Positions 506-63,061 of a stretch of 64,000 nucleotides of DNA are shown in pieces. Both the position numbers and the translations under genes were made by a program. The notes beneath the pieces were generated by a model, which worked only from the letters and a program-made list of their open reading frames with translations, was not told the DNA's origin and did no database searches. The stretch's first letter is position 1, and the number at the start of each line of letters is the position of its first letter. Source of the DNA: Ranitomeya imitator (lineage: Eukaryota); contig NC_091285.1 in assembly GCF_032444005.1 (NCBI RefSeq), forward strand, positions 607,972,001 through 608,036,000, given 5' to 3'.

Positions 506-1145
506 ACCATATCCCTGTTAAAAAAAAGAATTAAAATAAAAAATAGTTACATACTCACCTTCTGGAGCCTCCGGATCGAAGCGGCCGGTTCCCGATGCTT
601 GTCGCGTGCTACGGTCTGAAGATTGCATTGCGGTCTCGCGAGATGATGACGTAGCGGTCTCGCGAGACCGTACGTCATCATCTCGCGAGACCGCAATGCA
701 TGCAGCGGTCACCGGGGCGTCGCGCGGAGCGGGAAAGGCCGGTTCCTGATCCAGTGGGGGGGGCCACCGGAGGGGGAGTATGCAACTATTTTTTTTTTTT
801 ATTATTTTTAACATTAGATATTTTTACAATTCATGCTGCATAGGCAGCATGAAGAGTAAACAGTTGGTCACACAGGGTTAATAGCAGCATTAACCGAATG
901 CGTTACACCGCGGTCAACGCTGCCATTAACCCTGTGTGAGCGCTGACCGGAGGGGAGTATGCGGACGCCGGGCACTGACTGCGGGGAGGAAGGAGCGGCC
1001 ATTTTCTTCCGGACTGCGGCCGTCGCTGATTGGTCGCGGCAGCCATGACAGGCAGCTGCCGAGACCAATCAGCAAATGAATAACCGTGACAGACAGACAG
1101 ACAGAAGGACAGACGGAAGTGACCCTTAGACAATTATATAGTAGA
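1..1145 (-). mobile_element. Non-autonomous Helitron-like element, 5' part (continues beyond the window edge)
   Basis: On the minus strand it begins A|TCTACTATATAATTG at 1145, followed by a (CTGT)n microsatellite (1088-1113), a typical Helitron 5' end. Contains a CpG-rich palindromic core and a minisatellite. Confidence 0.65.
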
Positions 1146-1146
1146 T

Positions 1147-1380
1147 AGAATCAAAGAATATAGGGTTGGAAGGGACCTAACATCATGTCCACCCCCTGCT
1201 CAATGCAGGATCCACTAAACCATCTTTCTGTTTGTAGACTTCCATTGAAGGAGAACTCGCCACCTCTCGTGGCAGCCTGTTCCACTCACTGATCACTCTT
1301 ACTGTCAAAAAGGTTTTTATAATATCTAATCTGTGTCTTCTCCATTTCAGTTTCATTCTGTTGCTTCTTGTGTTTCCTTA
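1147..1380 (-). mobile_element. Old CR1 LINE 3'-end fragment
   Basis: Reverse complement resembles the CR1 ORF2 C-terminus and 3'UTR (acagtaagagtgatcagtgagtggaacaggctgcc...ccttccaacc...attct), like the other CR1 ends in the window. Confidence 0.65.
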
Positions 1381-1751
1381 TTGTATCTATAAAGTAATTA
1401 CCATAAAAAGTAAATAACAAAATTTACATTTTTTTGGTTGCAGATGCTGCACCTCCCCAAAAATATACAGTATAAAGCGATCAAAGAATTGAATGTACAC
1501 CAAGATGGTACCAATAAAAACTACAGCTCGCCTTACAAAAAACAATCTGTCAACAGCTCTGTTGCTGGAAAACTAAAAAAGTTACAAGTCCCAGAAAATG
1601 GTGAACACCATTTTTTTTTTTTTAACAAAGTTCAATTTAAAAAACAAAATAGTATCATCTTACCAATTTTCTCTCCATTTCATCTCACATAGGTAAGTTG
1701 ACAGAAAAATCCATAATGTAGTAAGGCAAAAGTAAAATGTCATGATTCTAT

Positions 1752-2315
1752 TGTTGGGTGACCCAGGACCAGGGGCTCCTTCCCTTCTCCTAACACTAGG
1801 GGGGCGCCCAGCTCGCCCTGTTCCCTGGGTTACTTCTGACGGTAAAGATGCCGGCATCACGTACCTTCCCTTATCTCCTGAATCTGCACCCCATCTGTAC
1901 CCTTCCCCCACCCAGAGAAGAGAGAAGTAGTTGTGCACCGTAGTACACCAACCAGGTAACATGAACAGGGGAAACAGAAACTATCAGGCATACAAATATA
2001 CACTCACATATAACAGAAGTATGCACCAGGGAGTGGCAGATGGGGTAGAAGCAAAGTAGGAGAAAAAAGGGAATTATCACACTTACTAAACCAAGCAACA
2101 GTCACAGATAAACACACCAAACACCTTCCCATATAACCACCAACTACTATCCTCCCAGCCATGCAGCAAAAGCTAGCTCTGACAATGTGTGTCAGTCAGG
2201 ACCCAGATTATATAGAGTATATATAGGAGTAGCTAACCGTGCTCAGCTGAGAGCCGTAGCTCCCAGACCTCTCGACATGGCCGATTAACCCCTGTACAGA
2301 CAAGAGAAATTTACA
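1752..2315. mobile_element. Probable solo LTR or LTR fragment
   Basis: TG...CA ends and LTR-like composition; no clear target-site duplication. Confidence 0.4.
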
Positions 2316-2592
2316 TTGTTTAAAAAGAAGTTGAAGTGCTTGAGTAGGAGCATACAGGAAAGATATATATCTTTGTACCGTGATAGCCAGTAGATAGAAT
2401 ATTATTTAGACGTGAGAGTCCTCAGTGGTTGATACCTTTTGAGTCGGAGCTATCAGATGCTGCAGTCTTCTGGCTCCTCTCTGTCGCGGTAGCCCAGTGA
2501 CAGAAAAAGTCTGCTGTGTTAATAATGCAATATTTGTATGGGTCCTCAATGGGGCAATTTTTCCATAAGATTATAACAGGTTACGAAATATT

Positions 2593-4340
2593 CATTGGTT
2601 ATGCAGTGGATGTTGCAATGGGTCCTTAAAGTACTACCAGAATCTTAGGGGAATGAAGAGAGAAAAAAAAAAAAAAAAGGGGTAAATGTTTGTTTTGGTG
2701 AATATAGTGAGTCTAAATAGATTTATAATATATACTCACTCAGATATTAAATGGAAATGTGCAATGAAGAGACGTGATCCCTGTGTATCTGCAATTGATG
2801 CGGGTATTGTGATGAGCACGGTTGCTTAATCTTCAGAGGTTTATAGTAGATGCCCCTGCTTAGATAAATGTACAACCTTTATAGGTAATGGTGGTTTTAA
2901 ATAAATGTGGTCTAGTTTTCCCAGTACACAATAAACTTACTGCTGGTGGGAGTAGCGCAGGATTCCGTTAGGTTAAGGTAGTAAGATGACCATCAGATGC
3001 TGGCTGACAAGGATTACTGTGATTAGAATTGATTGCCCATATGTTGAGATGAGGAGAAATGCTCCCCCAGTATGTTGGAGCGCTAATATGCCACAATTGC
3101 TATGTGCACATAAAATATGCTATACTCACTGTGGTGCTGAGTGCGGAGGGAAGCGGTTCCGGAAAGTCTGAGCCACCGCTAGGTGTACCACTATGACAGA
3201 GCGGTGGGTTAAGGAGAGAGTGGCGGCAGAAGCCGTGCGACCGCGAAACTTTGCGTGCCCCGGCCGGATGCAGCGCTGAGGTAGCGGTCTTAGGGTTTAA
3301 CCCTGATGAAGAGGGCCTGAGCCCTTGAAATGCATTGGTTTGCTGACTAGCTATACTAGCACACCTGTCCTCTTTAGCCCCGTAGCGTGGTGACGTCACC
3401 AGCAGCTCTGCCCACCCTCTCCAACCGCTACCTCAGCGCTGCATCCGGCCGGGGCACGCGAGGTTTCGCGGTCGCACGGCTTCTGCCGCCACTCTCTCCT
3501 TAACCCACCGCTCTGTCATAGTGGTACACCTAGCGGTGGCTCAGACTTTCCGGAACCGCTTCCCTCCGCACTCAGCACCACAGTGAGTACAGCATATTTT
3601 ATGTGCACATAGCAATTGTGGCATATTAGTGCTCCAACATACTGGGGGAGCATTTCTCCTCATCTCAACATATGGGCAATCAATTCTAATCACAGTAATC
3701 CTTGTCAGCCAGCACCTGATGGTCATCTTACTACCTTAACCTAACGGAATCCTGCGCTACTCCCACCAGCAGTAAGTTTATTGTGTACTGGGAAAACTAG
3801 ACCACATTTATTTAAAACCACCATTACCTATAAAGGTTGTACATTTATCTAAGCAGGGGCATCTACTATAAACCTCTGAAGATTAAGCAACCGTGGTCAT
3901 CACAATACCCGCATCAATTGCAGATACACAGGGATCACGTCTCTTCATTGCACATTTCCATTTAATATCTGAGTGAGTATATATTATAAATCTATTTAGT
4001 CTCACTATATTCACCAATACAAACATTTACCCCTTTTTTTTTTTTTTTCTCTCCTCATTCCCCTAAGATTCTGGTAGTACTTTAAGGACCCATTGCAACA
4101 TCCACTGCATAACCAATGATTACTCATTAAGTAAGTGCTCTCTTATTCATTTATTCATCTATTTTTCATTTTATTGTTCGTTTTTGTAGACAGCGCAGGT
4201 GAATACCACTCTTTTTCATTTTATATACTTTACAGGTCTACACAGAACCTGTCACAATCACCAGCAGCACGCTACATTCAGCAATTTTGTTTCCCCACTA
4301 GGGACTATCAGGAGCGCCAGTGCTTTTTACTTTCTTTTTT
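2593..4340 (+). mobile_element. Fold-back insertion of probable Penelope-like origin with a 15-bp TSD
   Basis: AGGTTACGAAATATT occurs at 2578-2592 and 4341-4355. Near-perfect inverted arms at 2592-3288 and 3424-4119; hammerhead-like core in the 135-bp spacer. Confidence 0.7.
3299..3340 (+). ncRNA. CpG-decayed minimal type-I hammerhead ribozyme motif
   Basis: AACC-CTGATGA-A-GAGGGC ctga GCCCTT-GAAA-TGCAT-T-GGTT gives stem I (4 bp), the catalytic core, stem II and a palindromic stem III. TTGAAATGCATTGG equals TCGAAACGCGTCGG after CpG deamination. Confidence 0.6.
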
Positions 4341-4360
4341 AGGTTACGAAATATTGATAG

Positions 4361-8505: not shown

Positions 8506-8589
8506 CTAAGGGGCCCCTGAGCAGGTGGTGGGCCCGGTGCCAGTAGTGGGCCCCCTGCCCATCATTGCAAGGTCAGCTGTTTTGGTGGG

Positions 8590-11265: not shown

Positions 11266-12479
11266 TATTCAATATAAAAAAAGATAAGAGTCAGGGTCTG
11301 ACTATTATGGTTAAATACATATGATGTTTCCTGAAATAACTGAAGAAGCTGAGCCCCCCCATACATCTTAGATAGCTGTAAGACGAATGATGGCTTAGCC
11401 AAACATTAGTCAGAATGCTATCTCAACAATCTCTGGAGGTGGTTTATCTACGGGGAATAAAAAAAAAATTGGACAAGCCAGATCCTTAACTCCCCTGACA
11501 GTCATCTGTCCTGGCCCCCACCCCAACCCCCCCTAAAACACGAGATTGTCATTTGAACCTGTCAATATTGGCAGGTTAGTCGAGGTCTGTTTAATGTGTA
11601 TTGGGTCTTTAGAGTCTAAAAAAGCTCCAGTGTCCATTGTGAAAATTTCAAGATTTTATATTTTTAATATTGATTAATATATACAAAACTGGAAAAATAA
11701 TATTTTATAAATACATTTAACACAAACCCTGTTTTAAACAAAAGGCCTTGTTCTGATGGCCCTTTAATTTTCTCACTGAAGAAGTGGATCTTTTAGGCCA
11801 GGGCTTCTCAAACATTTTCTACTTGGGCCTCACCAGACCAACCAAGATGATGCCTAAGCCATAAATCAAGGCTCATAACATACCATATATACTCGAGTAT
11901 AAGCCGAGATTTTCAGCCCAAATTTTTGGGCTGAAAGTGCCCCTCTCGGCTTATACTCGAGTCATGGTCGGCGGCAGGGTCGGCGGGTGAGGGGGAGAGA
12001 GGACTGTCGCATACTCACCCTCTTCCGGGGCTCCTGGCGCTCCCTCTGCCTGTCCCATGGTCTTCGGGTGCCGCAGCTCTTCCTCTGTTCAGCGGTCACA
12101 TGGTACCGCTCATTAAAGTTATGAATATGGACTCCACTCCCATAGGGGTGGAGCCGCATATTCATTCCTCTAATGAGCGGTAACGGTGACCGCTTACAGA
12201 GGAAGAGGCTGCGGCACCCGAAGACCATCTGTCCGGGATAAGGAGCCAGGGATGCCGGAGCAGGTGAATATCTCATATTTACCTGTCCACGTTCCATCCG
12301 CCAGGCGCCGCTCCGTCTTCCATGTCCTCTGCACTGACTGTTCAGGTCAGAGGGCGCGATGACGTACTAATCTGCGCGCCGCCCTCTGCCTGAACAGTCA
12401 GTGCGGAGAGACGCCGAGACGGGACGCTGAGGAGCTGCGGGCAGCAAGAGAGGTGAGTATGCCATTTTTTTTATTGCAG

Positions 12480-14030
12480 CAGCAGCATTATATATTGCAT
12501 AGCTTTATATGGAGCGTCTATGGGGCAATAATCAACGGTGCAGAGCATTATATATGGCACAGCTTTCTATGAAGCATCTATGGGGCCATAATGAACGGTG
12601 CAAAGCATTATATATTGCACATCTTTATATGTAGCATTTATGGGGCCATAATGAACGGTGCAGAGCATTATATATGGCACAGCTTTATATGGAGCATCTA
12701 TGGGGCCATAATGAACAGTGCAGAGCATTATATATGGCACAGCTTTCTATGGAGCATCTATGGGGCCATAATGAACGGTGCAGAGAATTATATATTGCAC
12801 ATCTTTATATGTAGCATCTATGGGGCCTGTTGTGAATTCTGCTCTTGGGCTCCCTCCGGTGGTTATGAGTGGTAGTGCTGCTGTCTTTGGATCGCAGCAC
12901 TTATCAGGTGTGTCCACCTTGGACTGGGCTATTTAGTCTTGCTTGATCCTTTAGTCAGTGCCAGTTGTCCATTGTTTTTGGAGGATTCACATCCCTGACT
13001 GGTCTCTCCTGTTTGCTGCTCTTTTCAACAAAGATAAGTTCTGGCTTTGTTTTTGCTGTCCACATGCTGTGAGCCTTATAGTTCTGTGCATTTTCATGTT
13101 TTGTCTTGTCCAGCTTGGTTTGTGTAAGGATTTTTTTGCAGCCAAGCTGTATCTCTGGAGATGCAGATATACCCTCCATGTCTTTAGTCAAATGTGGAGA
13201 TTTGTATTTTCTGTGGTGGATATTTTCTAGTGTTTTAATACTGACCGCATAGTACTCTGTCCTATTCTTTCTTTTTAGCTAGAAAGGCCTCCTTTGCTAA
13301 ATCCTGTTTTCAGTCTGCGTATGTCATTTCCCTCTCCTCTCACAGTCAATATTTGTGGGGGGCTGTCTATGCTTTGGGGATTTTCTCTGAGGCAAGATAG
13401 TTTTCCCGTTTCTATCTTTAGAGGTAGTTAGTTCTTAGGCTGTGTCGAGGGGTCTAAGGAGTGTTAGGTACATCCCACGGCTACTTCTAGTTGCAGTGCT
13501 AAGTTCAGGGTCTGCGGTCAGTACAGGTACCACTTTCTCCAGGGTACGTCACATGCTGCTCCTAGGCCACCAGATCATAACAGGGGCCATAATGAACGGT
13601 GCAGAGCATTATATATTGCACATCTTTATATGGAGCATGTATGGGGCCATAATCAACGGTGCAGAGCATTATATATGGCACAGCTTTATATGGAGCATCT
13701 ATGGGGCCATAATGAACGGTGCAGAGCATTATATATTGCACATCTTTATATGGAGAATCTATGGGGCCATAATGAATGGTGCAGAGCATTATATATGGCA
13801 CACCTTTATGTGGAGCATCTATGGGGCCATAATGAACAGTGCAGAGCATTATATATGGCACAGCTTTATGTGGAGCATCTATGGGGCAATAATGAAATGT
13901 ATGGAGCATTATGTGTGGCACAGTTTTATATGGAGCATCTATGGGGCAATAATGAAATGTATGGAGCATTATATGTGGCACAGCTTTATATGGAGCATCT
14001 AAGGGGCCATAATGAACGATATGGAGCATC
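12480..14030. repeat. 60-bp minisatellite inside the MITE, split by a solo LTR
   Basis: Unit tatggggccataatgaacggtgcagagcattatatatggcacagctttatatggagcatc repeats in register with the 60-nt lines. Confidence 0.95.
12828..13582. mobile_element. Solo LTR
   Basis: TGTTGTGAA...TCATAACA ends; GGGGCC on both sides; removing it restores the 60-bp unit. Confidence 0.85.
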
Positions 14031-15289
14031 TATTTTAATTTTTGAAATTCACCGGTAGCTGCTGCATTTTCCACCCTAGGCTTATACTCGAGTCAATAAG
14101 TTTTCCCAGTTTTTTGTGGCAAAATTAGGGGGGTCGGCTCATACTCGGGTCGGCTTGTACTCGAGTATATACGGTATATACGGTGTTTCCTGTATAACCT
14201 AAAAATAACAAACATCTAGTGTATTATGTTGCTGAACCAGATATTGCTGCAGCTACATAAAGGGCTGGAATTTATCACTACTGGAAAAGTTGCCTCCTTA
14301 TCTGGGCCTCACCTACTAAGGGGTGCCTCACTGGTGGGGCCCATATCACAGTTTGAAAAGCACTGTTTTAGGCCATAATTGGTTTTGTGCTCTAAACATT
14401 CTGAAGAATTTTCCATTTCCTGACCCTTAACCACTGCACGAAGGATCTTCAGGTTGCGGAGCGAGCCCAGAATAGTCACCAGATATACTGTTGTGAAAAA
14501 AACTTGTAGTAAAGTTATGAAAATAGCCTGGAGTCATCAATGGATTTAACAGTCAGGAGGCAAATCCTTTGTCAGGAGGCAGGCATGGAATTGATACAAG
14601 GAGAGAAACTACTGGAATCAGGCAGCAAATCCAAAGAATGAGACAAAAGTGTAATCCAAGAACAAGACCAAGGTGAAAAACAGGGTCAGACTCAAGGGTC
14701 AGGAACAATAATTCAGGCCAGGGATGTTCCTTAAAGGGATGGTTGACATTAACGTTGATTTTAATCCTAAACTTCTGTCTATTTAATGTAATAATCTAAT
14801 CGCTTTTCTACTATAAAAAGTCCCTATTGTTCCCTCTCTACTCTGTTCATCTGCTTTTTTTTACCTACCTCCAGTTTGATGACATTTAGTTTGATAATTC
14901 CAAGTGCATGCTGTGCTACTCAAACGGGACAACATCAGGGGGTAGAGGCTTGTCAATATGCAATATTACTTTCAATACATAGTGACAGTGCGCTCTCTTG
15001 CTGGCTCAGTTGAGAAGTGACATGGCCTGTCAGAAACCACACTGTCAGTGCATACTGTAAGAAGAGAATAAGGTGAGCAGGAAAAGCAGACACTCGTTCT
15101 GCCCCTAAAACTGACGTCAATTTTGGGGGTGGAACTGGTCTCTGCTAGCCTTGTTCTCACCTGACAGTGCGATCTCTTGCCAGATTGTCCCATCTTAGTA
15201 GTGCTGTGCATGGGCGATTGCCGTCGGGTGTCAGCTGATTCTGACAGCTGACACCCGGCACTAAATGTCATGAATGGTTCTGCACCGCT

Positions 15290-18200
15290 CCCAGCACTTT
15301 AACTCCCTAAATGCTGTAACCGCAGCATTCCGGGAGCCGGCAGTGGGATGACAGCCCCTCTGCCTTTGGATGGAGACCACGCAGCGTGATGCGGGGTCTT
15401 GATTGTTGCCATGGTGACTCGATGTCATTATGACGACATCCGGGTCACCAGAGCTAGAAAAGTTGCTGATCATGTGCTGTGCATGATCAAAAACTATCTC
15501 TGTTTGAATAGCATGGGTATGGTGCTGCATCCCCATTCTGTACAAGTGATCAGCCTGCAAAAAATGATAGTCCCATAGTGGGACAAAGTTAAGAAAAGTA
15601 AAAAAATGTTTTTTTTTTAAATAATTGTAAAAATATTTAAAAAAATAAATAAACAAATAAAAAGATATTGTATCGATAAATAAATATTTGTATGAAAAAA
15701 ATATAAATGTAAACATATATAAAACTGTCCCACTAGTTAACCCCTTTAGTGAATACCATACAAAAATAAATTAAAACAAGGCAAAAAACGACGCTTTATC
15801 ATCATACTGCTGAACAAAAAGTAGAATAAAACGCGATCAAAAAGACGGATATAAATAAACATGGTAACACTGAAAATGTCATCTTGTCCTGCAAAAAACA
15901 AGCTGCCATACAGCTCCATCAGCAGAAACATAAAAAAAGTTATAGCTCTCAGAATAAAGTGATGCAAAAATAATTTTTTCTTAAAAAAAATTGTTTTTAT
16001 TGTGTAAAAGCACCAAAACATAAAAAAACTATATAAATGTGGCATCGCTGTAAACGAACTGACCTGAAGAATAAAACTGCCTTATCAATTTTATCACACA
16101 TGGAATAGCATAAATCCCCCCTCCAAAAAAAAAAATTCCTGAATTGCTGGTTTTTGTTCACTCTGCCTCACAAAAATCGGAATAGAAAGCAATCAAAAAT
16201 GTCATGTGCTTGAAAATGGTACCAATAAAAATATCAAATCGTCCTGCAAAAAACAAGACCTGACATAATTCTATGGGCCAAAATAAGGTAACATTATAGC
16301 TCTCATAAAATGGTGATACAAAAACTATTTATTGCAATAAAAAACATCTTTAAAGGGACTATGTCACAAGGTTTGGCCGATATGAGTTACGGCCATCACC
16401 TTTCAGGGCTTATCTACAGCATTCTATAATGCTGTAAATCAGCCCCCAACCTGACCTGTAGGAGAAGAAAAATAACTTTTATTATACTCAGCCGTGGGGC
16501 AGTCCGGTCCGAGGAGCGTCACTCTTCATCTTATGATCGCAGTCCCCCTTCTTGCTTCATGTAGATGACGCGTCCAGGCATCATCTACACAGTCTTCTCA
16601 GCATTGCGCTCCTGCGCAGGCGTACTTATCTGCCCTGTTGAGGGCAGAGCAAAGTCCTACAGTGTGCAGGTACTGGGTCACTTTGACCTTTCCCAGGGCC
16701 TGCACACTGCAGTACTTTGCTCTGCTCTCAACAGTGCAGATAAGTACGCCTGCGCAGGAGCACGATGCCAAGCAGACTGTGTGGATGATGCAAGGACACG
16801 TCATCCACATCAAGCAAGAAGGAGGATGGCGATGGTAAGAAGATGGGAGGCACCAGACCAAGAAGAGTGACACTCCTTGGACCAAAGCACCCCGCAGGTG
16901 AGCATAATACAGGTCGGATTGGGGGCTTATCTACATATGGGGTATCGGCGTACTCAGGAGTAATTGCACATCAAATTGTATGGTGCAATTTCTCCTGTTA
17001 CCCTTTTGAAAATGCAAAACTTGGGGCTAAAATAACATTTCTGTGGGGACGAAGTGATTTTATTATTTTTACGGCTCAACGTTATAAACTTCTGTGAAGC
17101 ACCTGGAGGTTCAAGGTGCTCACCACACATCTAAATACATTCCTTGAGGGGTCTAGCTTCCAAAATGGGGCCTCTTGTGGGGGGTTTCCATTGTTTAGGC
17201 ACATCAGGGGCTCTCCAAATGGGACATGAAGTCCGCTAATGATTCCAGGAAATTTTACATTCAAAAAGTGAAATGATACTCTTTCCCTTCTAAGCCCTGC
17301 TGTACGCCCAAACAGTAGTTTTCTCCCTCATATGGGGTATCGGCATACTCAGGAGAAATTGCACATCAAATTGCATGGTGCAATTTCTCCTGTTACCCTT
17401 ATGAAAATGCAAAATTTTTGGCTTAAAATAACATTTTTGTGGGGAAAATGTGATTTTTTTTATTTTCACGGCTTAACATTATAAACTTCTGTGAAGTACC
17501 TTGGGGTTCAAGGGGATCACCACACATCTAGATCAGTTCGCTGATGAATCTAGTTTCCAAAATGGTGTCATTAATGGGGGCTTTCACAGTTTAGGCACAT
17601 CAGAGGCTCTCCAAATGCAACATGGCATCCGCCAATTGTTCTAGCAAATTTTGCATTCAAAAAATCAAATGTCGCTCCTTCCCTTCCGAACTTTGCTGTG
17701 CGCTCAAACAGTGGTTTTCTCCCTTATATGGGGTTTTAGCATGCTCAGGAGAAATTACACAACAAATTATGGGGTCCATTTTTTCCTGTTAAGTTAAATG
17801 TTCATTTTTATTTAAACATTACAAAAATTCCTGTGAAACACCTGAAGGGTTAATAAACTTCTTGAATGTGGTTTTGAGCACCTTGAGGGTGCAGTTTTTA
17901 GAATGGTGTCACACTTGGGTATTTTCTATCATGTAGACCCCTCAAAGTGAATTCAAATGTGTTGTGGTCCCTAAAAAATAATTTTGTAAATTTTGGTGAT
18001 AAAATGAAACATCGCTGGTCAATTTTTAACCCTTGTAACTTCCTAACAAAAAAAAAATGTTTGTTCCAAAATTGTGCTGATGTAAAGTAGACATGTGGGA
18101 AATGTTACCTATTAACTAATTTGTGTGACGTATCTCTGTGATTTAAGGGCATGAAAATTCAAAGTTGGAAAATTGCGAAATTTTCTAAATTTTTACCAAA

Positions 18201-21860: not shown

Positions 21861-22091
21861 TTAGCTACGTTACCATAAAAATTTCCTCCAAGACTTTGTG
21901 TGATACACAGTATTTTGGTCATTTGCCCAGGGATTTGTAGCGTTGCTACATTTCTTTAGCTTCTTTTTCAGTTTGCACATATCTCAGTAACCGACTTCTC
22001 CAGATGCTACAGGTTAAACTTGTGGATCGGAATGTTAATGCTCGTTCTTGTATGAGCAATGATGGTAATTCTTTATATTATCATCGGCTTA

Positions 22092-22806
22092 AGGTACCTT
22101 CACACTGAACGATATCGCTAGCGATCCGTGACGTTGCAGCGTCCTGGCTAGCGATATCGTTCAGTTTGACAGGCAGCAGCGATCAGGATCCTGCTGTGAT
22201 GTCGTTGGTCGCTGCAGAAAGTCCAGAACTTTATTTCATCGCTGGACTCCCTACAGACATCGCTGAATCGGCGTGTGTGACGCCGATTCAGCGATGTCTT
22301 CACTGGTAACCAGGGTAAACATCGGGTTACTAAGCGCAGGGCCGCACTTAGTAACCCGATGTTTACCCTGGTTACCAGCGTAAATGTAAAAAAAAAAAAA
22401 AACTACATACTTACATTTCGGTGTCTGTCCTCCGGCGCTGTGCTTCTCTACATTGTCAGCGCCGGCCAGCCGGAAAGCAGAGCACAGCGGTGACGTCACC
22501 GCTGTGCTTTCCGGCTGGCGCTCACAGTCAGTGCAGAGAAGCACAGCGCCGGGGGACAGACACCGGAATGTAAGTATGTAGTGTTTTTTTTTTTTACGTT
22601 TACGCTGGTAACCAGGGTAAACATCGGGTTACTAAGCGCGGCCCTGCGCTTAGTAACCCGATGTTTACCCTGGTTACCAGGGGACCGGCATCGTTGGTCG
22701 CTGGAGAGCTGTCTGTGTGACAGCTCTCCAGCGACCAAACAGCGACGCTGCAGCGATCGGGATCGTTGTCTGGATCGCTGCAGCGTCGCTAAATGTGACG
22801 GTACCT
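22092..22806. mobile_element. Palindromic GGTACC-ended MITE (Harbinger-like)
   Basis: TIRs AGGTACC(T/G)TCACA; TTA on both sides; nested hairpins around a central TGACGTCA (22491-22498). Confidence 0.8.
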
Positions 22807-24095
22807 TTACTCCACTGTCTGAGGCTTGTTTCCCATTGAACCTGCTCGAGGCTGCATCATAATTAGCTCTTCCTTTGTTATTTTAAAACAAGTCTGAGCG
22901 CTTCCAAAATAATGTGTGTTACCATGTTGTCCTGCTATCTTCATTCAGTATTAAAGGGAATGTGCTATCAGAAAAATAACATCTTGTATAAAGTGGGTTT
23001 CTGTATTAAATATATATTTAACACTTTTCCCAAAGTTTGTAATTTCCATATCACAATTTTTATTAAAAATTAGAAATCTTGCAATTTTCATGCTATTTAA
23101 GAATACAACATGCTTAGAAAAATTCACACACACATTAGCAGCAATGAACAGATCCTGACTCTTATCTTTTGTACTGAAGCATTTAATGAGCATGTGCAAA
23201 GGTCAATGTGAACACACAGGAAACAGGGTCAGGGACATGACCTATTGTGAATGATGAATCCTTTGTTATCAGCTCTGTATAGTGATGTTATCAGACATCG
23301 TAATTCTACCTCTGATCAAACTACTGTAAACTATTCCTACAAGGAACATCGCAGAAATATATTTATGACACGCTAAATATACATATAAGTCATAGACAGG
23401 GCTGGATTGGCACAGTCTTTTAAATGGGAAAAAAAGTCCGGGAACATCAGCCACAGTGTCCTATCAGCATCAGTCAGAAGAGAGAGGGGTCAACAAATAG
23501 CAAACACAGCCCTGCAGCAGTTTTCATGGATAAACAGCATGGCAGGAGGAGGATGCAGTCTGTGAGTCTACAGCTGATTATCAACATAATAATAACCTAT
23601 ATGCCAAGCCAGCACCCAAAATCCACAGTGCACGGAATGGAAAAGTATCAAGGGGTGCAAGGATGTATAGGACAAGGTTCAGTGCAAAATCATGAAAATC
23701 ATACCGAAGAGAAAGCACCAAGAGAACCAAAATTAGTAAAAATATTAAACTTAATTATTACACATCAAATTATGATCATACGTGTTGAAAATTATGCATG
23801 GAAAAGACAATGGTAAGCTGAAAGATGAAACCACGGTGGTAAAACAGGCTAGCAAGTTGCAAAAATCCCCAGGCCAAGTTAGCGTGACAAACAGGTCATA
23901 AAGTAAAATGCATTGGGCAGTAATGTGTATCATTGTGCAATAACAATATAGATACTATAAGTGGTGAGACACTCATTGCGCACAAAATACATAGAGGCTG
24001 GCAGCCATCAAAAGAAAAAAGTGCAAGATCTGAACTCATTGATGTAAAATACATGAACAGCCAAAGGGGTTACCTGTAAAGCCATGGGGCCACCC

Positions 24096-28420: not shown

Positions 28421-28424
28421 ACCC

Positions 28425-29447: not shown

Positions 29448-31154
29448 CTGCTGTTCTGACAGATGGCGGGCGCACTGCGCATGCGTCCACCATGTTCTTC
29501 TGCCGGCGGCCAGGAGGAGCAGCAAGAGGATCCAGGGACACAGGTGAGTATTGTAGGGTCCCCGAATCCCCCTATTTCTCTGTCCTCTGATGTGCGATCA
29601 CATCAGAGGACAGAGAATTACAATTTACTTTTTTTTTTGCGGTCGCCGGTAAACAGTTAATTACCGGCGATCGCAAAACAGGGGTCGGTAAAACCGACCC
29701 CGATCATGCTCTTTGGGGTCTCGGCTACCCCCGGCAGCCGAGACCCCAAAGATTTTCCCGGTGCCGGCCGGCGGGCGCACTGCGCATGCGCCCGCCATTT
29801 TGAAGATGGCGGCGCCCACCGGGAGACACGAGGAGCATCGGGGGAGCTAGGTGAGTATTGGGGGGCCACCTGGGACCCCTTTTCTCTGTCCTCCGATGTG
29901 CGATTACATCGGAGGACAGAGAAATTAAAAAGAGATCGCGTTTTTTGGGGTTTTTTTTGCGATCGCCGGTAAACGGTTAATTACCGGCGATCGCAAATGC
30001 GGGGTGGGTTAAAAACCCCCCGAATCATGTTCTCTGAGGTCTCGGCTACCCCCGGCAGCCGAGACCCCGGAGAAAATCGGCCTCTGGGGGCCGCTATTGA
30101 CTTTTTCCACAGCGCCGTTAATTAACGGTGCTGTGGTTTAAGTACCCTTAGCGGCCGCCGTTAAAAGGCGTATCGGCGGTCGCTAAGGGGTTAAAGCCCC
30201 TTGTCATGAGGCCCACATAAATTTTATTGCAAGGGCATGTCCCATGATAAACAACCATAGTGGTTTAACAAGTAATTGTTTGAGTAATCAAAAACTCTTT
30301 GCCCTCAGAGGATAGAAAATGATTGGCACTGACAATATTCGGGCAGGAAACACAATTTCCATAGGGTCTGCAACCCCATGGAGAACCACGGGGAACAGAC
30401 TCTATAGAGAAAATGGGGGACGGCTTAGCAGGTTTAAAATAACTCTTAACCAGATGGTCACCCAAGTTTTATGACCTACGAGCTGTAATTGAAGGTCGGG
30501 AAGGTAAGTATTGCCTCAAAATAGGGTCGGCAAGGAGTATGGGCCAATATTTAGACACTGAGTCCTGCATCTCCCTCCAACGTGAGTGATACTGTGTTAC
30601 CAAGCCTTACCTTGTTAGTGGTCCTAGTTTTAGCAGTCGAATACAGGAGTTGATGTCTGTCAGTGTTCTTGGCCCTATTGTTGGCCTTTTTGATACTCCT
30701 CTTCCTATAGCCGCAATTCAAAAAACGAGTTTTCATATCCTCAGGATGGGCCTCAAAAGCTTCATTAGATGAACAAACTCTCCTGATACGGAGAATCTGG
30801 CCAGCGGGAACGGCATTAATCACATGAGGCGGGTGGGATGATGATGAATGTAACACAGAAATAACCGCCGTATCCTTACGGAAGGCATTGGCAAGCAACA
30901 TGCCATCCATACCCCTCTCCACCAGTACATCTAGAAAATCAATCCGAAAAAAATCAAATTCATAAGTAAGATGTATATTAAGCTGATTGTCATTTAGTTC
31001 ACAAAAAAAAAACTGCAATTCAAGAGGTGTGCCTCGCCAGATCAGGAAATGTAAATATACATATAAATCGTACACAGGGCTGGACTGGCACAGTCTTTTA
31101 ACACAATGGGAAAAAAAGTCCTAGAACATCAGCCACAGTGTCCTATCAGCATCA

Positions 31155-38243: not shown

Positions 38244-38499
38244 CAGAGCGCCGGGGACAGACAGCTGAAGGTAAGTATGTAGTGTTTGTTTTTTTTACTT
38301 TTACGATGGTAACCAGGGTAAACATCGGGTTACTAAGCGCGGCCCTGCGCTTAGTAACCCGATGTTTACCCTGGTTACCGGCATCGTTGGTCGCTGGAGA
38401 GCTGTCTGTGTGACAGCTCTCCAGCGACCAAACAGCGACGCTACAGCGATCGACATCGTTGTCGGTATCGCTGCAGCGTCGCTTAGTGTGAAGGTACCT
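38244..38499. mobile_element. Right half of a GGTACC-ended MITE
   Basis: Matches 51620-51876 and 22550-22806; ends gtgtgaaGGTACCT|TTA. Confidence 0.85.
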
Positions 38500-38776
38500 T
38501 TAGTAAAAGTATGTTTAATAGCCAATATGAACATGCTCCTATTTTGCATGCATACCAACTTATACTCCAGTTAATTTTTTCAGCTTAGTTTAACAAAATT
38601 GTCCAGCCCTTTTTGGAGTTTTGTGTGAAACGATGACCATTATTTCTTTCTACCTCTGTGTTTTTATGTTGTTCCAATACACACAAAGGAAATATGTATA
38701 TAACAAAACACGTGTAATTGCAATAATTTTCTGGGAGAAACAATTCATTTCCTGGAACAATTTCAAGGGTGCCAAC

Positions 38777-46596: not shown

Positions 46597-48217
<1,621 letters not shown>

Positions 48218-51034: not shown

Positions 51035-51123
51035 TTACTGTAAAGAACCCTTTCCTATATTGCTACCGGAATCACCTTTCTTCCACCCATAATGAGTGCC
51101 CGTATGGCCCTTGAAAGGAATAA

Positions 51124-51876
51124 AGGTACAGTCACACATAACGATATCGTTAACGATATCGTTGCTTTTTGTGACGTAGCAATGATATCGTTAAGGAAAT
51201 CGTTCTGTGTGACAGCAACCAACGATCAGGCCCCTGCTGGGAGATCGTTGGTCGCTGAGGAAAGTCCAGCACTTTATTTCGTCGCTGGATCTCCCGCTGA
51301 CATCGCCGGATCGGCGTGTGTGATGATCGGCGTGTGTGATGCCGATCCAGCGAAGTCTTCACTGGTAACCAGGGTAAACATCGGGTTACTAAGCGCAGGG
51401 CCGCGCTTAGTAACCCAATGTTTACCCTGGTTACCAGCGTAAACGTTAAAAAAACAAACACTACATACTTACCTTCAGCTGTCTGTCCCCGGCGCTCTGC
51501 TTCTATGCACTCCTCCTGCATCCTGTGTCAGCGCCGGCCGGCCGGAAAGCACAGCGGTGACGTCACCGCTCTGCTTTCCGGCTGACCGGCGCTGACAGTG
51601 CAGAGGAAAGCACAGCGCCGGAGGACAGACAGCTGAAGGTAAGTATGTAGTGTTTGTTTTTTTAACGTTTACGCTGGTAACCATGGTAAACATCGGGTTA
51701 CTAAGCGCGGCCCTGCGCTTAGTAACCCGATGTTTACCCTGGTTACCGGGGACCTCGGGATCGTTGGTCGCTGGAGAGCGGTCTGTGTGACAGCTCTCCA
51801 GCGACCACACAGCGACGCTGCAGCGATCGACATCGTTGTCGGTATCGTTGCAGCGTCGCTCAGTGTGACGGTACCT
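51124..51876. mobile_element. GGTACC-ended palindromic MITE
   Basis: Same family as 22092-22806 and 62301-63061; central TGACGTCA at 51558-51565. Confidence 0.85.
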
Positions 51877-52272
51877 TTAGTCATGTACCATACTCTGTAC
51901 TGTCCACACACATATTTATACATATAAATCACATCTCCTTTGAGACGTCTTTCTTCTATGCTAAATGAGCCCAACTTGGTCTTTGTGTCTTGTTTGTTTT
52001 GTGTCTCACTGAATCTCTGTAGAGATAAAATGCTTTAGTTTGGTAATCAGACTAAAGATAGTAATTGTATTTGTAAAATGATTGTGAAAGCCTGCAAAAT
52101 GCAATTATCACATAAAGGAAAGCCAAGGAGGAATTCTCAATTTGCACAAAGTTTAACTATTTTGACTACAAAGTTGTCTGATCTGTAGATAGAAGTTTAT
52201 CCAAGAGACCAAAACTGATTTCATTATGAATGTACAAACAGGTTTGTATTAATCATTTTATGTCCTACCTTA

Positions 52273-52697
52273 GGCTACTTTCACACTAGCATTGTTTGGC
52301 CTCCGTCGCAATGCGTCGTTTTGGAGAAAAAACGCATCCTGCAAAGTTGCCCGCAGGATGCGTTTTTTTTTTTTCTCCATAGACTTTCATTAGAGACGCA
52401 TTGCGACGGATTGCCACACGTTGCATCCGTCGTTCGACGGATGCGTTGTGTTTTTGCAGTCCGTCGGGACAAAAAAAGTTGCATGCAACATTTTTTTGTC
52501 CGTCGGTTCCGCTTTTTCCGACCGCGCATGTGCGGCGGGAACTCCGCCCCCTCCTCCCCGGACCCTACAATGGGGCAGAGGATGCATTGTAAAACTGCAT
52601 CCGCTGCCCCCGTTGTTCATTTTCTTCACAGTTTGTGTCGGTACGTCGGGCCGACGCATAGCGACGGCCCCGTACCGACGCTCGTGTGAAAGTAGCC
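52273..52697. mobile_element. Harbinger-type MITE
   Basis: TIR GGCTACTTTCACAC; TTA TSD. Confidence 0.85.
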
Positions 52698-56020: not shown

Positions 56021-56559
56021 TTGTGTGAAAAAGAAGAGCGGAGTTCTTAGCCGATGAACTCCATTCACCTCACTGACGTCACTGCTCTCACACTAGTGGT
56101 GACGTCAGTGAGGTGAAAGGAGGTGCAGCTGTTTGCCTAGCCTGTGCTGGTTATTAAATACGGGTGGGGGGGGGGGGGGGGTTGTCATTTTTTTTGTGTG
56201 TGTGTGTGTGTGTGTGTGTGGGGGGGGGGGGGGTATTTTAATAACCAGTAAAGGCTAAGCATAAAACTATAAGCTGATAATAATAGCCTGGGAAGATCCA
56301 TGTTGATTATCCCCTTCCCAGGCTATAGACATCTGCCATCAGCCCTTTCCCTTTGCTGGTTATTAAAATTTTCAGGGGACCACACACCCTTTTTTTCTTA
56401 ATTAAATAACTCTTATTAGCTAAATCCATGAACATTAAACTACAGACACACCGCACTAATTATATACGTCTCTGACATCTTTCTATCTATTCCATGTATC
56501 TATATCTATTCTATGTATATACCTGTTCTGATGGCTCACACAGTGAATTTACTGTAGTC

Positions 56560-57289: not shown

Positions 57290-57960
57290 ACACATCGACT
57301 GTATGTGAGGCCGCCATACGCCGCGCACCGCAGCGCTATGGCCAACGAATGGTTAACTGCCGCCACTCCTCGTCCATGACGTTAAGCCCCGCCCGTCCTG
57401 TCCCTCCGCCCCGCCCACTCTGCGGAGTCACCGCTCCTTCGGTGGCTTCTCAAGAGTTGGATCCGGCCACGTCACTCCTGCCAGCAGAACGGCACGCCTT
57501 CCTCTCATTGTCACCAATCAGCGGAAGACTGGGCGGGACAAGTGTGAGGGGAGTGCCCAATAGAGACGCGCTCCGGGAATGACGGGCAAGGAGGCGACCA
57601 ATAGGAAGAATCAGGTTGTTCTGGTGACGTCGGCAGCACGGTCCGTGGTCCTTATGTAGGGTCGGCGAGGCTGAGCTGGCCGCAGACAGTGTGTGATAGT
57701 GACATCTCACAGAGCGCGGCACAGAGGAAGAGCAGCATGTGTGGTGAGTATGCGCACACTGCCTGCCGGCTACGGGGCTTCCCGGCTCCCTGCATGGCAC
57801 ACGGGCAGCTTCTTCCCCTCTTCTCAGCATCCTCGGGCTGACGTGCTCGGTGCTGCTCACCTTGTGCTGACGGCCGGTGACCCTGTCTGTGCCCTCTCTC
57901 CAGTAATGGCCGTTCTGGGCTCTGATGTTCTCTCATCGCTGCTTCACTCCTGTGTGTGGT
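57290..57960 (+). promoter_or_regulatory. CpG-island promoter
   Basis: CpG-dense, non-palindromic sequence with GC boxes (about 57387, 57404, 57530), three CCAAT boxes (about 57514, 57557, 57598) and a CRE-like TGACGTC (57624-57630), upstream of an ATG and splice donor. Confidence 0.75.
57737..57743 (+). CDS. Coding part of a probable first exon (ATG TGT G | GTGAGT); candidate GFPT1-type glutamine--fructose-6-phosphate aminotransferase, unconfirmed
   Basis: Kozak -3A (gcAgcATG) and a consensus donor GTGAGT at 57744. A 7-nt MC(G) first coding exon is the known GFPT1/GFPT2 structure, but exon 2 (GIFAYLNY...) is not visible in the window. Confidence 0.45.
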
Positions 57961-60220: not shown

Positions 60221-61175
60221 GGCTGGTTTCACATGTCAGTGACTCTGGTACGTGAGGTGACCGTTTCCTCACGTACCGGAGACACTGACTCACATAGACA
60301 CATTAAAATCAATGTGTCTCTGCACATGTCAGCGTGTTTTCACAGACCGTGTGTCCGTTTGGAAAACACGGAGACATGTCAGTGTTCGTGGGAGCGCACG
60401 GATCACACGGACCCATTAAAGTCAATGGGTCCGTGTAAAACACGTACCGCACACGGATGTTGTCCGTGTGCCGTGCAGGAGACAGCGCTACTGTAAGCGC
60501 TGTCCCCTGCGTGCGTTGCTGAAACCGGTATTCATCCCTTCTTCCCAGCAGCGTTCGCTGGAAAGAAGGTATGAATAATTTTCTTTTTATTTTTTAAAAT
60601 AAAGTTGCCGGTAATCTGCCCCCTCCCACCCCCTGTGCGCCCGCCCGCTGGCATTAAAATACTTACCCAGCTCCCTCGGCGCTTCCATCCTCTCAGCGTC
60701 GCTGCTTGTCCTGTATGATCGGTCATGTGGTGCCGCACATTACAGTGATGAATATGCGGCTCCACCTCCCATAGGGGTGGAGCCGCATATTCATTACTGT
60801 AATAAGCGGCACCACGTGACCGCTCATACAGGAAGAGCTGCGACGCTGAGGGAGCTGGGTAAGTATTTTAATGCCAGCGGGCGGGCGCACAGGGGGTGGG
60901 AGGGGGCAGATTACCGGCAACTTTATTTTAAAAACAAAATAAAAAAAAACTTATTCATTCCTTCTTTCCAGCGAACGCTGCTGGGAAGAAGGGATGAATA
61001 CCGGCTTCAGCACCGCACGCAGGGGACAGCGCTTAACTCTAGCGCTGTCTCCTGCATGGTCCGTGTGGTCCTCAGTCGGCACACGTGTGCCACACTGATG
61101 TGCTACGTAAGCACACGGACAATTCCAGTACCGATTTTTCCGGTACCGGAATTATCTGGACGTGTGGGACAGGCC
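60221..61175. mobile_element. Harbinger-type MITE with a long internal palindrome
   Basis: Imperfect TIR GGC(T/C)(G/T)GT(T/C)(T/C)CACA; TTA TSD at 60218-60220 and 61176-61178; arms about 60470-60770 and 60775-61050. Confidence 0.85.
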
Positions 61176-61335
61176 TTAGGTAGCTTGGCAGATCTTTTTA
61201 AAGTCCTACATAAAGAACATTTTTGAAGGGCTTATGGTCTGCGTACGTACGGACGACAACCTGAAATGCCTACCAAGTGCAAGAGAAAGTTTACACTTGT
61301 CAGAGACTCTCACCCAACCAAACCAGAGCTCCTAC

Positions 61336-61377
61336 TTTACACTGATGAGGGGCAAAGACTCGAAACATGTCTGCAAA
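61336..61377 (+). ncRNA. Near-intact minimal type-I hammerhead ribozyme motif
   Basis: TTTACA-CTGATGA-GGG gcaaaga CTC-GAAA-CATG-TC-TGCAAA: full core, palindromic stem III ACATGT, GUC cleavage triplet and stem I with 5 of 6 bp paired. Confidence 0.7.
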
Positions 61378-62300
61378 TTCAGTTTTTCTTATCCTACTCA
61401 ACCCTACCTTTTCTAGGGTCAATATTGACTCTGTAGGATTGCTATCTCCAATATAGGGCCCTAGAGTTCCTGTTCTCTTCCTGTCTAAAGTGACTACTTG
61501 TTTACCAGGAATATAAATTGTGCCACCATAGCATTTCAAGACTGTGTTTTCTTTGTGTCTAGTTATGTCCAATTTTGTAAGAGTAGAGTTGAGAGATACT
61601 TGGATGCTTTATCATTTGGGTGGAGGACTTGAGAAAGATTTGCATTTAAGTGCCCGGATTTCTTCTTCTCATGGGCAGATTTCCCAGAATTACTAAGCTA
61701 GAACAAGTCTTGGGCAATGGATGATTTTGCATCTGTTAAGGAAGCCATAGACAAAAAGATTTGGTCACAAACAAGTTTGCATCGCTGTAGAAAGTGCAAA
61801 TTATGGAGGTCTGAGCCTAGAAAGGGGTTTGCTTATGATTTTAATGATATCCTGATCATGAAAATTAAAGTCTCTCTTATCTAATATTTATATTGCCCTA
61901 AATGGGATATTCTCTGCTGATGACCCTGGGGAGTGTGAACATGATTTATGAAGTAAGGCCACATATACAGTAGTTCCTGAATGTCTTCATCCCAGGGAAT
62001 AACTGATGCACTGAAGAAATCCTGCACTTTAATGGGAATTTTTCAGTATGATCCATCCCCATGATATCTGATGTCATATTACAGAAAAATCCATTTTTTT
62101 CTTAATATGTAAATGAGTTGTTAAGATCTATGGGCTGGACAAAGATCTCCCTGAGAATCTGCCTCCAGAGCTTATTGTAAATGAAAGTGGCAGTTACCAG
62201 TGTGAGTCGTGTAATGACTGACAGTCTGCTCTGAATCTACATGTCTCACTCTGGTAATGCCCTTTTTAATTTAAAATAAGCCCTGGGGGCAGATTCTTAA

Positions 62301-63061
62301 GGTACCGTTACACTAAACGACTTACCAATGATCACGACCAGCGATACGACCTGGCCGTGATCGTTGGTAAGTCGTTGTGTGATCGCTGGGGAGCCGTCAC
62401 ACAGACAGCTCTCTCCAGCGACCAACGATCAGGGGAACGACTTCGGCATCGTTGAAACTGTCTTCAACTATGCCAAAGTCCCCCTGCAGCACCCGGGTAA
62501 CCAGGGTAAACATCGGGTTACTAAGCGCAGGGCCGCACTTAGTAACCCGATATTTACCCTGGTTACCACTGTAAAAGTAAAAAAACAAACAAAAAAAAAC
62601 ACTACATACTTACATTCCGATGTCTGTCACGTCCCCCGCTGTCAGCTTCCCTGCACTGACTGTGTCAGCGGCGCCGACCGTAAAGCAGCACAGCGGTGAC
62701 GTCACCACTGTGCTCTGCTTTACGGCCGGTGCTGACAGTCAGTGCAGGGAAGCTGATGGCGGGGGACGTGACAGACATCGGAATGTAAGTATGTAGTGTA
62801 GTGGCCCTGCACTTAGTAACCCGATATTTACCCTGGTTACAAGTGAACACATCACTGGATCGGCGTCACACACGCCGATCCAGCGATGACAGCGGGAGAT
62901 CAGCGACCAAAAAAAGGTCCTGATCATTCCCCACGACCAACGATCTCCCAGCAGGGGCCTGATCATTGGTCGCTGTCACACATAAGGAGATTGTTAGCGG
63001 GATCGTTGCTATGTCACAAAAAGCGTGATGTTGCAACGATATCGTTATGTGTGAAGGTACC
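62301..63061. mobile_element. GGTACC-ended palindromic MITE
   Basis: TIR GGTACC(G/T)T(T/C)ACAC; TTAA on both sides; central TGACGTCA at 62697-62704. Confidence 0.85.

Follow-up and report, generated by a model that had tools for sequence, protein, structure and literature searches.

Fold-back modules carrying promoter-type words and outward-facing 5' splice sites recur in the genome of a dendrobatid frog, Ranitomeya imitator, in a pattern that is non-random, exceeds chance and is repeated across modules unrelated in sequence. They are almost certainly internal parts of highly abundant non-coding DNA transposons (MITEs). The analysis covers one window, the whole 64-kb stretch of DNA, in which the sites were picked by eye. 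From the centre outward, an arm contains first promoter-type words (CRE, the CGCG element, NRF1/YY1 and ETS-like CCGGAA), next ~40-100 nt rich in purines, then a 5' splice site complementary to U1 snRNA from -1 to +8 (GGTRAGTAT) and, often, a U-rich tail (pyrimidine- or T-rich in the DNA). We tentatively suppose, with a probability of roughly 0.4, that selection acting in the transposon lineages has preserved the donor word as a putative RNA-level landing site for U1 snRNP, the module being a natural promoter-plus-splice-donor unit. The modules, their hosts and a control promoter are located as follows.

523..809: module A, a palindrome with A-rich and T-rich flanks.
551-559, minus strand: donor of module A, ATACTCACC (reverse complement GGTGAGTAT).
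624-700: centre of module A, a 77-bp palindrome, 97% symmetric, with TCTCGCGAGA at 634, 658 and 681.
773-781: mirror donor of module A, GGGGAGTAT, degenerate.
2664..4048: fold-back absent from the first-pass annotation, with 625-nt arms of 99% complementarity and the layout of the modules; TGACGTCA at 3391 in the loop, GC-rich inner arms leading outward to GTGAGTAT (3122, minus) and GTGAGTAC (3583, plus), then AT-rich sequence.
11882..14172: host of modules B and C, a 2.3-kb non-coding element with a 28-nt TIR (CCRTATATACTCGAGTA...), TA-flanked.
12011..12271: module B, a palindrome; donors at 12011 (minus, exact) and 12263 (plus, GGTGAATAT).
12275..12460: module C, a palindrome with TGACGT at 12360; donors at 12275 (minus, reverse complement CAGGTAAATAT) and 12452 (plus, exact); on its right side a T run, then a 60-bp tandem repeat.
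16475..16914: module D, a 440-bp palindrome adjoining a ~395-bp satellite; degenerate donors at 16484 (minus, reverse complement GCTGAGTAT) and 16897 (plus, GGTGAGCAT).
22091..22807: copy E, a ~700-bp MITE with TIR AGGTACCKTCACAC, TTA-flanked.
22303-22680: palindrome of copy E, 378 bp, centred on TGACGTCA (22491); donors at 22407 (minus) and 22570 (plus).
29448..30195, plus strand: modules F and G, two tandem ~305-bp units in a single orientation; the unit holds NRF1-type and YY1-type words (GCGCATGCGC at 29782, AAGATGGCGG at 29803), a purine-rich stretch, AGGTGAGTAT (29543, 29850) and then four short hairpins.
38244..38504, plus strand: half copy K, a right arm, with an exact donor at 38270.
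51123..51879: copy H; donors at 51465 (minus) and 51638 (plus), both exact; TGACGTCA at 51558.
57300..57751, plus strand: single-copy real promoter and first exon, the control; donor GGTGAGTAT at 57743.
60221..61185: host of module I, a Harbinger-type MITE with TIR GGCTGGTTTCACA / GGCCTGTCCCACA (reverse complement, ending at 61185) and a TTA target duplication at 60218-60220 and 61186-61188.
60494-61035: module I, the central palindrome of that host; exact donors at 60659 (minus) and 60858 (plus).
62300..63062: copy J, in the opposite orientation to E and H; donors at 62606 (minus) and 62785 (plus); TGACGTCA at 62697; right T run deleted.

All words cited in the first-pass annotation were found where it had placed them, and its central description, donors that face outward after a purine-rich segment in modules sharing little sequence, is confirmed for the U1 word from -1 to +8. 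It counted at least seven elements with different termini; the hosts show two distinct end types (TTA-flanked Harbinger-type and TA-flanked Tc1/pogo-type), and the ten sites collapse to six sequence families: E with H, J and K; B with I; F with G; and A, C and D singly. Outside the donor word, families share only blocks of at most 10-16 nt (z at most 5), such as the 16 nt common to C and E, the 16 nt common to C and I and the 10 nt common to C and F. In all modules except F/G, the outward donor pairs that had been described are the two mirror arms of a single long palindrome; F/G is a tandem unit pointing one way. Since such a module is a palindrome, its second donor mirrors the first, and the bidirectionality that had been taken for an evolved property follows from the fold-back, which supplies both directions. 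The donor word occurs once per arm, at the edge of the GC-rich interior and away from the element ends; no direct target duplication was found around the modules, whose flanks are mirrored rather than repeated. Purines make up at least 67% of the 30 nt upstream of the donor in 6 of 8 families, and 70% in the real exon.

Enrichment was evaluated against a first-order Markov model of the window. GGTRAGTAT occurs 13 times on both strands against 1.08 expected, a raw count inflated by palindromy and by family copies; approximately eight exact words are independent, which by a rough estimate gives a Poisson tail near 1e-5. U1 complementarity of 9/11 or better is reached at 31 sites of the window, and 19-20 of them fall in modules. 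The orientation is outward in six families, or seven when the weaker 8-mer words of the fold-back at 2664..4048 are included, and inward in one case, a CRE-centred palindrome at 15061-15170 with weaker donor-like words.

The promoter-type words (CRE, CGCG element, NRF1 with YY1) are enriched, central and clustered upstream of the donor. TGACGTCA was observed 7 times against 0.5 expected in the window, and TCTCGCGAGA 3 times against 0.02, but all three lie within a single palindrome. The other promoter motifs first annotated fare less well: the YY1 core is not enriched in the window (11 observed, 13 expected), nor is CCAAT (14 against 22), which had been listed as a common feature. The proposed CpG-rich core is likewise not distinct from its surroundings, because the whole MITE bodies are CpG-rich (o/e 1.0-1.3); the flanks reach 1.03-1.34, the cassettes 0.84-1.32 and the window 0.54, and no CpG island set apart from flanking MITE bodies of equal or higher o/e was found. 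Module D has a CpG o/e of just 0.52. T-rich tracts, said to follow the donors usually, do so in about half of the families: they are present in A, on the right side of C, in the E family and on the left side of D, and absent from B, F, G and I.

Two hosts have recognizable ends. The host of module I is a PIF/Harbinger-type MITE, as its TIR, its 3-bp TTA duplication and an empty site demonstrate; at the latter, 60222 is connected to 61205 in a related-species contig by a run of 16 diverged letters. The host of B and C has ends of the Tc1/mariner/pogo type and is non-autonomous: its inverted repeats (11880-11907 and 14150-14177) are 93% identical, TA adjoins both ends, and no transposase domain was found in its ORFs. 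The Harbinger and pogo labels given earlier fit these two. The flanks of the E family are mixed, TTA/TTA in E and TAA/TTA in H, and those of J can also be read as TTAA plus GGTACC, a TTAA-target alternative. The labels Helitron-, T2- and piggyBac-like are not supported at the level of verified element ends. Helitrons have 5' TC and 3' CTRR ends with a 3' hairpin and insert between A and T; module A has no second copy within the window. The piggyBac elements have CCC...GGG termini with TTAA duplicated on either side, and the right end of the F/G host reads ...CTAAGGGG TTAA, while its left end lies within or beyond an assembly gap (29274-29447) that cuts module F and across which no conclusion rests on sequence. 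Kolobok and T2-MITEs are defined by a TTAA target and terminal AGGRR (PMC6004289); near module D, AGGAGAAG occurs at 16460 with no TTAA before it and no mirror on the right.

In unrelated hosts that differ in end type, modules B and I share a ~150-bp core of 84% identity. Beyond this core the arms are non-homologous and of unequal length, and every arm still ends in a donor. The shared core with different arms supports exchange or modularity; the earlier proposal had named exchange or convergence.

Between the two arms of a palindrome, the donor word differs at 8% of positions and the surrounding 60+30 nt at 30% (Fisher p = 3e-5, a value biased by site choice). Its variation resembles that of splice donors, with +3 being A or G and -2 being A in, by eye, 6 of 9 representative arms, and so fits recognition by U1 at the RNA level better than binding of a protein to DNA. 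The AT at +7/+8 is retained in all families, and ordinary splice donors mostly lack it. Five donors are degenerate (773, 12263, 12275, 16484 and 16897), and one donor has decayed in 4 of 8 palindromes, implying no constraint on individual insertions. We discarded a reading of the word as a U1 snRNA pseudogene: no Rfam family exceeds threshold anywhere in the window, there is no homology to U1 beyond the first 11 nt, and the likeness ends past ATACTTACCT when judged by eye against the U1 sequence.

RNA evidence was available as contigs, in which transcript starts cannot be seen and depth is a poor measure. At the real promoter, which has orthologous single-copy sequence in a related species, contigs cover only 57594-57790. 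Modules I and J lie within a transcribed first intron, with locus-specific contigs on the flanks (59595-60143 and 61167-61508). Among the best-supported rows listed for two RNA contig sets, none shows a GT..AG joint from 60866 or 62792, and the cassette bins are represented in RNA relative to DNA no better than neighbouring transposon bins. In four public R. imitator gene models (P0003, P0004, P0005 and P0008), transposon-derived exons from two module families end at a cassette donor; the exon is the first in three models and internal in P0008. These ends are perhaps just a choice of the gene finder. The models resemble real-gene fragments to which ab initio initial exons have been attached.

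If the proposed U1 landing site operates, an RNA starting inside the module would have a short, exon-like leader with a very strong donor at its end. Such an RNA might be joined by splicing to host exons further downstream or, failing that, be protected against early termination. An RNA reading through the whole palindrome would instead form a hairpin of ~100 bp with the donor buried. For this reading we count the word enrichment, the outward orientation, the concentration of U1-complementary sites in modules, the shortness of the blocks that families share outside the word, its donor-like variation, the purine-rich upstream stretch, the B and I arms, the two end types, the empty site at I, the arm mismatch and the gene-model exon ends, as well as the published description of TCTCGCGAGA as a methyl-sensitive element inducing bidirectional transcription (PMC6192621). 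Against it we count the decayed donors, the CpG richness that is not specific to the core, the restriction to one window with sites picked by eye, and the RNA contigs, which gave no sign of donor use. Also against it are two other Harbinger-type MITE families in the window that lack such a module, the model exons, which traverse the whole palindrome instead of beginning at its centre, and the read-through hairpin of -162 kcal/mol, which would bury the donor. A wider version seems doubtful to us: that in poison frogs non-coding DNA transposons belonging to different superfamilies gained, by exchange or convergence, a portable unit of putative promoter, leader and perfect U1 site, whose recruitment of U1 snRNP and housekeeping factors might keep chromatin open or unmethylated, or make the transcripts seem 'intron-bearing' to host surveillance, with thousands of alternative first exons as a by-product.

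Other origins of the pattern have to be weighed. The module could be a relic, namely the promoter, non-coding first exon and first-intron start of an autonomous parent, mirrored later by fold-back duplication and inert in the MITE; its likeness to housekeeping promoters would then arise because transposon genes need germline expression. F/G, which is one-directional and reads as an ordinary NRF1/YY1 promoter with a first exon, fits this, as does the decay of donors in single copies. However, a relic is hard to reconcile with a B/I core in hosts of different end types, with the AT at +7/+8 and with the two deletions required to retain only the middle of the parent, and we regard it as unlikely while giving it appreciable weight. 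We assign a clearly lower probability to a tolerance filter, in which no promoter is involved and a strong U1 site in both orientations suppresses premature cleavage of the host transcript. Copies with donors would survive preferentially because they are less harmful, the A-rich, poly(A)-signal-like runs of the MITE being countered in host introns. U1 is known to suppress nearby poly(A) sites, A and I have A-rich runs with AATAAA-like words immediately beyond their antisense donor, long A runs occur in the E family, and I and J sit in the transcribed first intron. Yet the donor would be paired within the long hairpin of a read-through transcript, many MITE families lack the module, and survival bias acts on insertions whereas single copies lose donors freely.

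A DNA-level or historical origin is similarly improbable: the word might be left over from a single ancient module that the families had in common, or be bound by a transposase or accessory protein, with its donor likeness incidental. The short blocks common to C and other families and the clearly common B/I core would be expected from this, but not a word that is single in each arm, invariably faces outward from the border of the GC-rich interior and lies away from the element ends, that varies as splice donors do, and that lies in modules with mirrored flanks. As for chance combined with selection by eye, donors would be found in any repeat-rich window and each match doubled by palindromes, and the inflated raw count, the inward case and the weak significance of the orientation tally alone (6-7 against 1) agree with this. 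Approximately eight independent exact 9-mers where about one is expected, in a consistent position after a purine-rich stretch, render it very improbable.

If the donor and promoter words are under selection, the modules would be nature's equivalent of engineered promoter/splice-donor traps, spread through a 6-7-Gb genome by MITE copies numbering tens of thousands. Direct tests could then ask if parasitic DNA exploits the splicing machinery to evade silencing or to reduce the damage it does in introns, how many frog alternative first exons arise via modules, and for what reason gene finders break up genes and call spurious initial exons in genomes of this kind. This last question would be of practical use even with inert modules; among the public models examined, four take a MITE-module exon.

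Several known systems resemble parts of this arrangement. Introners are non-autonomous DNA transposons reported to bear splice sites and to generate introns (PMC9860276, PMC12130899), and share with the frog elements inverted repeats, target duplications and spliceosomal signals in their sequence. They differ in supplying or co-opting a 5' and a 3' site and being removed as introns, whereas the frog modules have two outward 5' sites, and the frog element would start or end an exon instead of being spliced out. A matched acceptor and spliceable interval were looked for and none was seen; we reject an introner reading, because the two strong sites are both 5' sites that point out of the interior. 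CpG-island promoters with the CGCG element (PMC6192621) are comparable to module A, a putative promoter with three exact TCTCGCGAGA 10-mers; only module A has them, all in one 77-bp palindrome. A strong putative U1 site near A-rich, poly(A)-signal-like sequence resembles two further systems. These are the retroviral major splice donor and telescripting, which involve U1-dependent suppression of nearby poly(A) sites; the frog site differs in being a predicted one, base-paired in read-through RNA. The L1 antisense promoter and LTRs supply a start and a donor, yielding repeat-gene fusion transcripts, and a repeat-borne putative start and donor are found here as well; those are retroelements with one family each, whereas the frog look-alikes sit in short non-coding DNA transposons of differing end types. 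In insertional mutagens of the Sleeping Beauty T2/Onc type, an engineered promoter and splice donor give transcripts that splice into downstream host exons. The frog modules share with them promoter-type words, a short leader and a strong donor inside an inverted-repeat cut-and-paste transposon; unlike these man-made constructs of shown activity, they occur naturally in tens of thousands of copies, owe their mirrored form to palindromy and are putative in function.

The words cited in the first-pass annotation were all recovered at their positions. The counts of donor and promoter words are as follows.

Words in the window, observed count against first-order Markov expectation
GGTRAGTAT (donor word), both strands: 13 observed, 1.08 expected
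TGACGTCA: 7 observed, 0.5 expected
TCTCGCGAGA: 3 observed, 0.02 expected, all in one 77-bp palindrome
GCGCATGCGC: 2 observed, ~0 expected
CCAAT-type words: 14 observed, 22 expected
YY1 core: 11 observed, 13 expected

CCAAT and the YY1 core had been listed among the motifs of the module cores, but neither is enriched in the window because both counts lie below expectation. The modules (A-K, putative units of promoter words and splice donors inside small non-coding DNA transposons, MITEs) hold 19-20 of the 31 window sites whose complementarity to the U1 5' end extends to 9 or more of 11 positions. The stretch preceding the donor is 67-77% purine for six of the eight families; the real exon of the single-copy promoter/first-exon control (57300-57751) has 70%. 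Read by eye, donor variation tracks the degeneracy of splice donors, with A or G at +3 and mostly A at -2, and the AT at +7/+8 is invariant among intact words. Therefore, the word covers -1 to +8 of the U1 pairing.

The outward-pointing donor "pairs" are the two arms of single long palindromes.

Palindromes carrying the donor modules
523-809, module A
12011-12460, modules B and C, two adjoining palindromes
16475-16914, module D
22303-22680, module E
51359-51752, module H
60494-61035, module I
62497-62840, module J

The paired geometry claimed earlier thus stands, whereas an evolved bidirectionality does not, since the arrangement follows from fold-back symmetry. Modules F and G have no palindrome; they are two tandem units of ~305 bp in a single orientation, F being interrupted by the sole assembly gap (174 N, 29274-29447), on which none of our conclusions depends. 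In four of eight palindromes the donor on one arm has decayed to GG, GC, GTGAAT or GTAAAT, implying that single insertions are not constrained. Arm-versus-arm mismatch is 8% in the donor and 30% around it, a biased comparison that we discount because the sites were chosen for carrying the word. The two arms of B, of C and of D are strongly unlike over the 35-45 nt preceding the donor, and the donor word is retained. The T-rich tract said to follow the donors is present after A, C, the E family and D_L, but absent after B, F, G and I.

The read-through RNA of module E is predicted to form one hairpin (-162 kcal/mol, z = -22), in which the donor pairs with its own mirror, i.e. the first nine letters of U1. 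On this folding model, the donor would be exposed solely in RNAs that start within the palindrome, which bears on mechanism.

Two further fold-backs were observed. The palindrome at 15061-15170, centred on TGACGTCA (CRE), has weaker donor-like words that point inward (AAGGTGAGCAG on the left, CTCACCT on the right) and is a counter-example to the outward-donor rule. The fold-back at 2664-4048, uncited earlier, has the same layout as the modules; its arms are 625 nt long with 99% complementarity, its loop holds a hammerhead-like CTGATGA...GAAA word (~3303-3330) and TGACGTCA (3391), and a search of the whole window returned no Rfam family at threshold for it.

BLAST within the window sorts the modules into six groups: E, H, J and the half copy K; B and I; F and G; and A, C and D singly. 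With the donor word masked, local alignments across families reach z values of at most 5, and the shared blocks of C are 16 nt with E, 16 nt with I and 10 nt with F. B and I have a common core of ~150 bp at 84% identity in unrelated hosts; beyond it their arms are non-homologous and 13 versus 45 nt long, with the donor at the end of each. A small MITE nested in many hosts was considered and rejected: the flanks outside the donor words are mirrored (ctac...gtag, cattaaa...tttaatg) rather than direct repeats, so there is no target duplication around the modules, and the palindromes extend past the donor word.

E, H and J are MITEs of ~700 bp with ends AGGTACCKTCACAC, adjoining TTA/TAA. The host of module I, a MITE of 965 bp, ends in GGCTGGTTTCACA / GGCCTGTCCCACA and is flanked by TTA at either end; B and C lie in a non-coding element of 2.3 kb whose 28-nt inverted repeats adjoin TA. 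The Helitron, T2 and piggyBac labels given to the hosts of A, D and F/G are putative. The claim of unrelated hosts is therefore supported for two end types, but not for five superfamilies. A contig of organism B, a related frog, joins 60222 to 61205, a clean empty site for the module I host, so that this insertion arose after the two frogs split. The two arms of the palindrome show a 10% difference and a 17-nt indel, implying that the source copy was already an imperfect palindrome. One DNA contig (depth ~197) of organism A, whose DNA runs match the window better than those of organism B, omits 288 bases at 62532-62821; some E-family copies may therefore lack the whole cassette (the stretch between paired donors), or the palindrome collapsed in assembly. 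Two more Harbinger-type MITE families, with ends AGGCTNCTTTCACAC and GGCCGGGGTCACAC adjoining TTA, occur in the window.

Harbinger-type MITE families without a donor module
21441-21863, 28824-29249 and 52272-52698, copies of one family
46105-46321, the other family

Several repeats adjoin the modules. Tandem arrays lie beside A (1-500, units of ~20-22 bp), C (12470-12830, 60 bp) and D (16932-17700, units of ~395 bp, an array found also at 25861-28428), and a donor word at 4717 (minus strand) borders a ~20-bp repeat at 4740-5040. Immediately right of A (952-1080), a second GGGGAGTAT precedes a GC-rich stretch that holds GCCATTTT, and a palindrome with two CCAAT boxes (1027-1071). A small palindrome at 56040-56130 has two TGACGTCA words 26 bp apart and adjoins G-runs and a GT microsatellite.

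The window (G+C 43%, CpG o/e 0.54) is generally rich in repeats, including several MITE families, satellites and transposon ORFs.

Transposon ORFs in the window
46955-47986, intact Tc1-like transposase, 343 aa, HTH and DDE_3 domains; enclosing element begins at ~46596
33275-34291, second Tc1-like transposase copy, broken
40926-43361, minus strand, LINE, 811-aa ORF with endonuclease and reverse-transcriptase domains

Sampled words of the window are present at 0.73-0.77 in organism A DNA runs and at 0.22-0.24 in organism B. ORFs across one module match solely Ranitomeya imitator gene models, and a 29-nt E-family pattern had no match in metagenomes.

The CpG richness ascribed to the cores is not specific to them, since the remainder of the same MITEs has an o/e of 1.03-1.34 compared with 0.84-1.32 in the cassettes; whole MITE bodies exceed 1, with the genome at 0.54. 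In the E family, the loss of consensus CpGs is 0.20 per dinucleotide, i.e. ~0.10 per site versus 0.092 per non-CpG site, in a sample of four copies (22091-22807, 51123-51879, 62300-63062, 38244-38504) that is too small and confounds subfamily differences with decay. These rates give no sign of the excess loss expected in methylated DNA. Together with the CpG-rich MITE bodies, they hint that the elements are weakly methylated in the germline, or that the family has subfamily structure.

As expected of RNA, the RNA contigs cover the real first exon (57594-57790) and leave its unique flanks uncovered. Unique intron sequence next to module I is covered too, and therefore I and J are transcribed within an intron. 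Among the best-supported RNA contigs listed, neither 60866 nor 62792 is the start of a GT..AG joint. In one RNA/DNA comparison (X8), based on best-supported contigs and on depth, which is a poor measure, the ratio is 0.3-0.4% in cassette bins, the low end of the 0.4-4% range of transposon bins.

Public Ranitomeya imitator gene models end transposon-derived exons at the donor (P0005 after GQTAEG, P0003 after GTDTE, P0004 similarly), and P0008 ends one at the B/I-family donor. The module-bearing models consist of short pieces of real genes (MCM10, IGF1R, a Sushi-domain protein). They open with an ATG within the MITE and cross the entire palindrome, and so resemble initial exons predicted ab initio. 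A gene finder "sees" a first exon here, which is no demonstration that the frog does. Across P0001-P0008 (GCA_958301615.1), MITE sequence serves as initial, internal or terminal exons beside real domains (G-alpha, Sushi, MHD, IGF1R kinase, MCM10 zinc finger), probably as annotation artefacts from strong donors.

Judged from sequence, the best description of the module is a fold-back unit with arms that imitate, or descend from, a promoter, leader exon and strong donor. We tentatively favour selection on transposon lineages for an RNA-level U1 site, at a probability of about 0.4. Several observations count for a real, selected feature: the exact 9-mer recurs in about eight independent contexts, keeps one orientation and stands where the purine-rich stretch ends; it varies as splice donors do; it closes the non-homologous arms of B and I and persists between the unlike arms of B, C and D; and gene models end exons at it. 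The absence of the module from the window copies of both further Harbinger-type families counts against one. Chance and ascertainment, the reading opposed to such a feature, is very unlikely. That the modules are a relic of the parent elements' own gene starts is a weaker candidate than RNA-level selection, though the likeliest of the remaining readings. Both a filter against premature polyadenylation and a DNA-level or purely historical cause of the donor word seem improbable.

Other candidates were rejected. A U1 pseudogene or Dada-type snRNA-targeting element does not fit, as the likeness to U1 stops at 10-11 nt and the window is without an Rfam match. An introner or mini-intron, with donor, T run and AG within 27-47 nt, would be below vertebrate intron length, and the layout is unmatched. 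A Pol III unit, with the CRE upstream and a T-run terminator, was an idea only, and internal promoter boxes are absent. In searches that covered few subscription journals, the literature on splice donors, U1 sites and promoter words in DNA transposons, MITEs and frog repeats held no description of such modules, which does not establish their novelty. Among published classes, introners (PMC9860276, PMC12130899) and CGCG-element promoters (PMC6192621) come closest.
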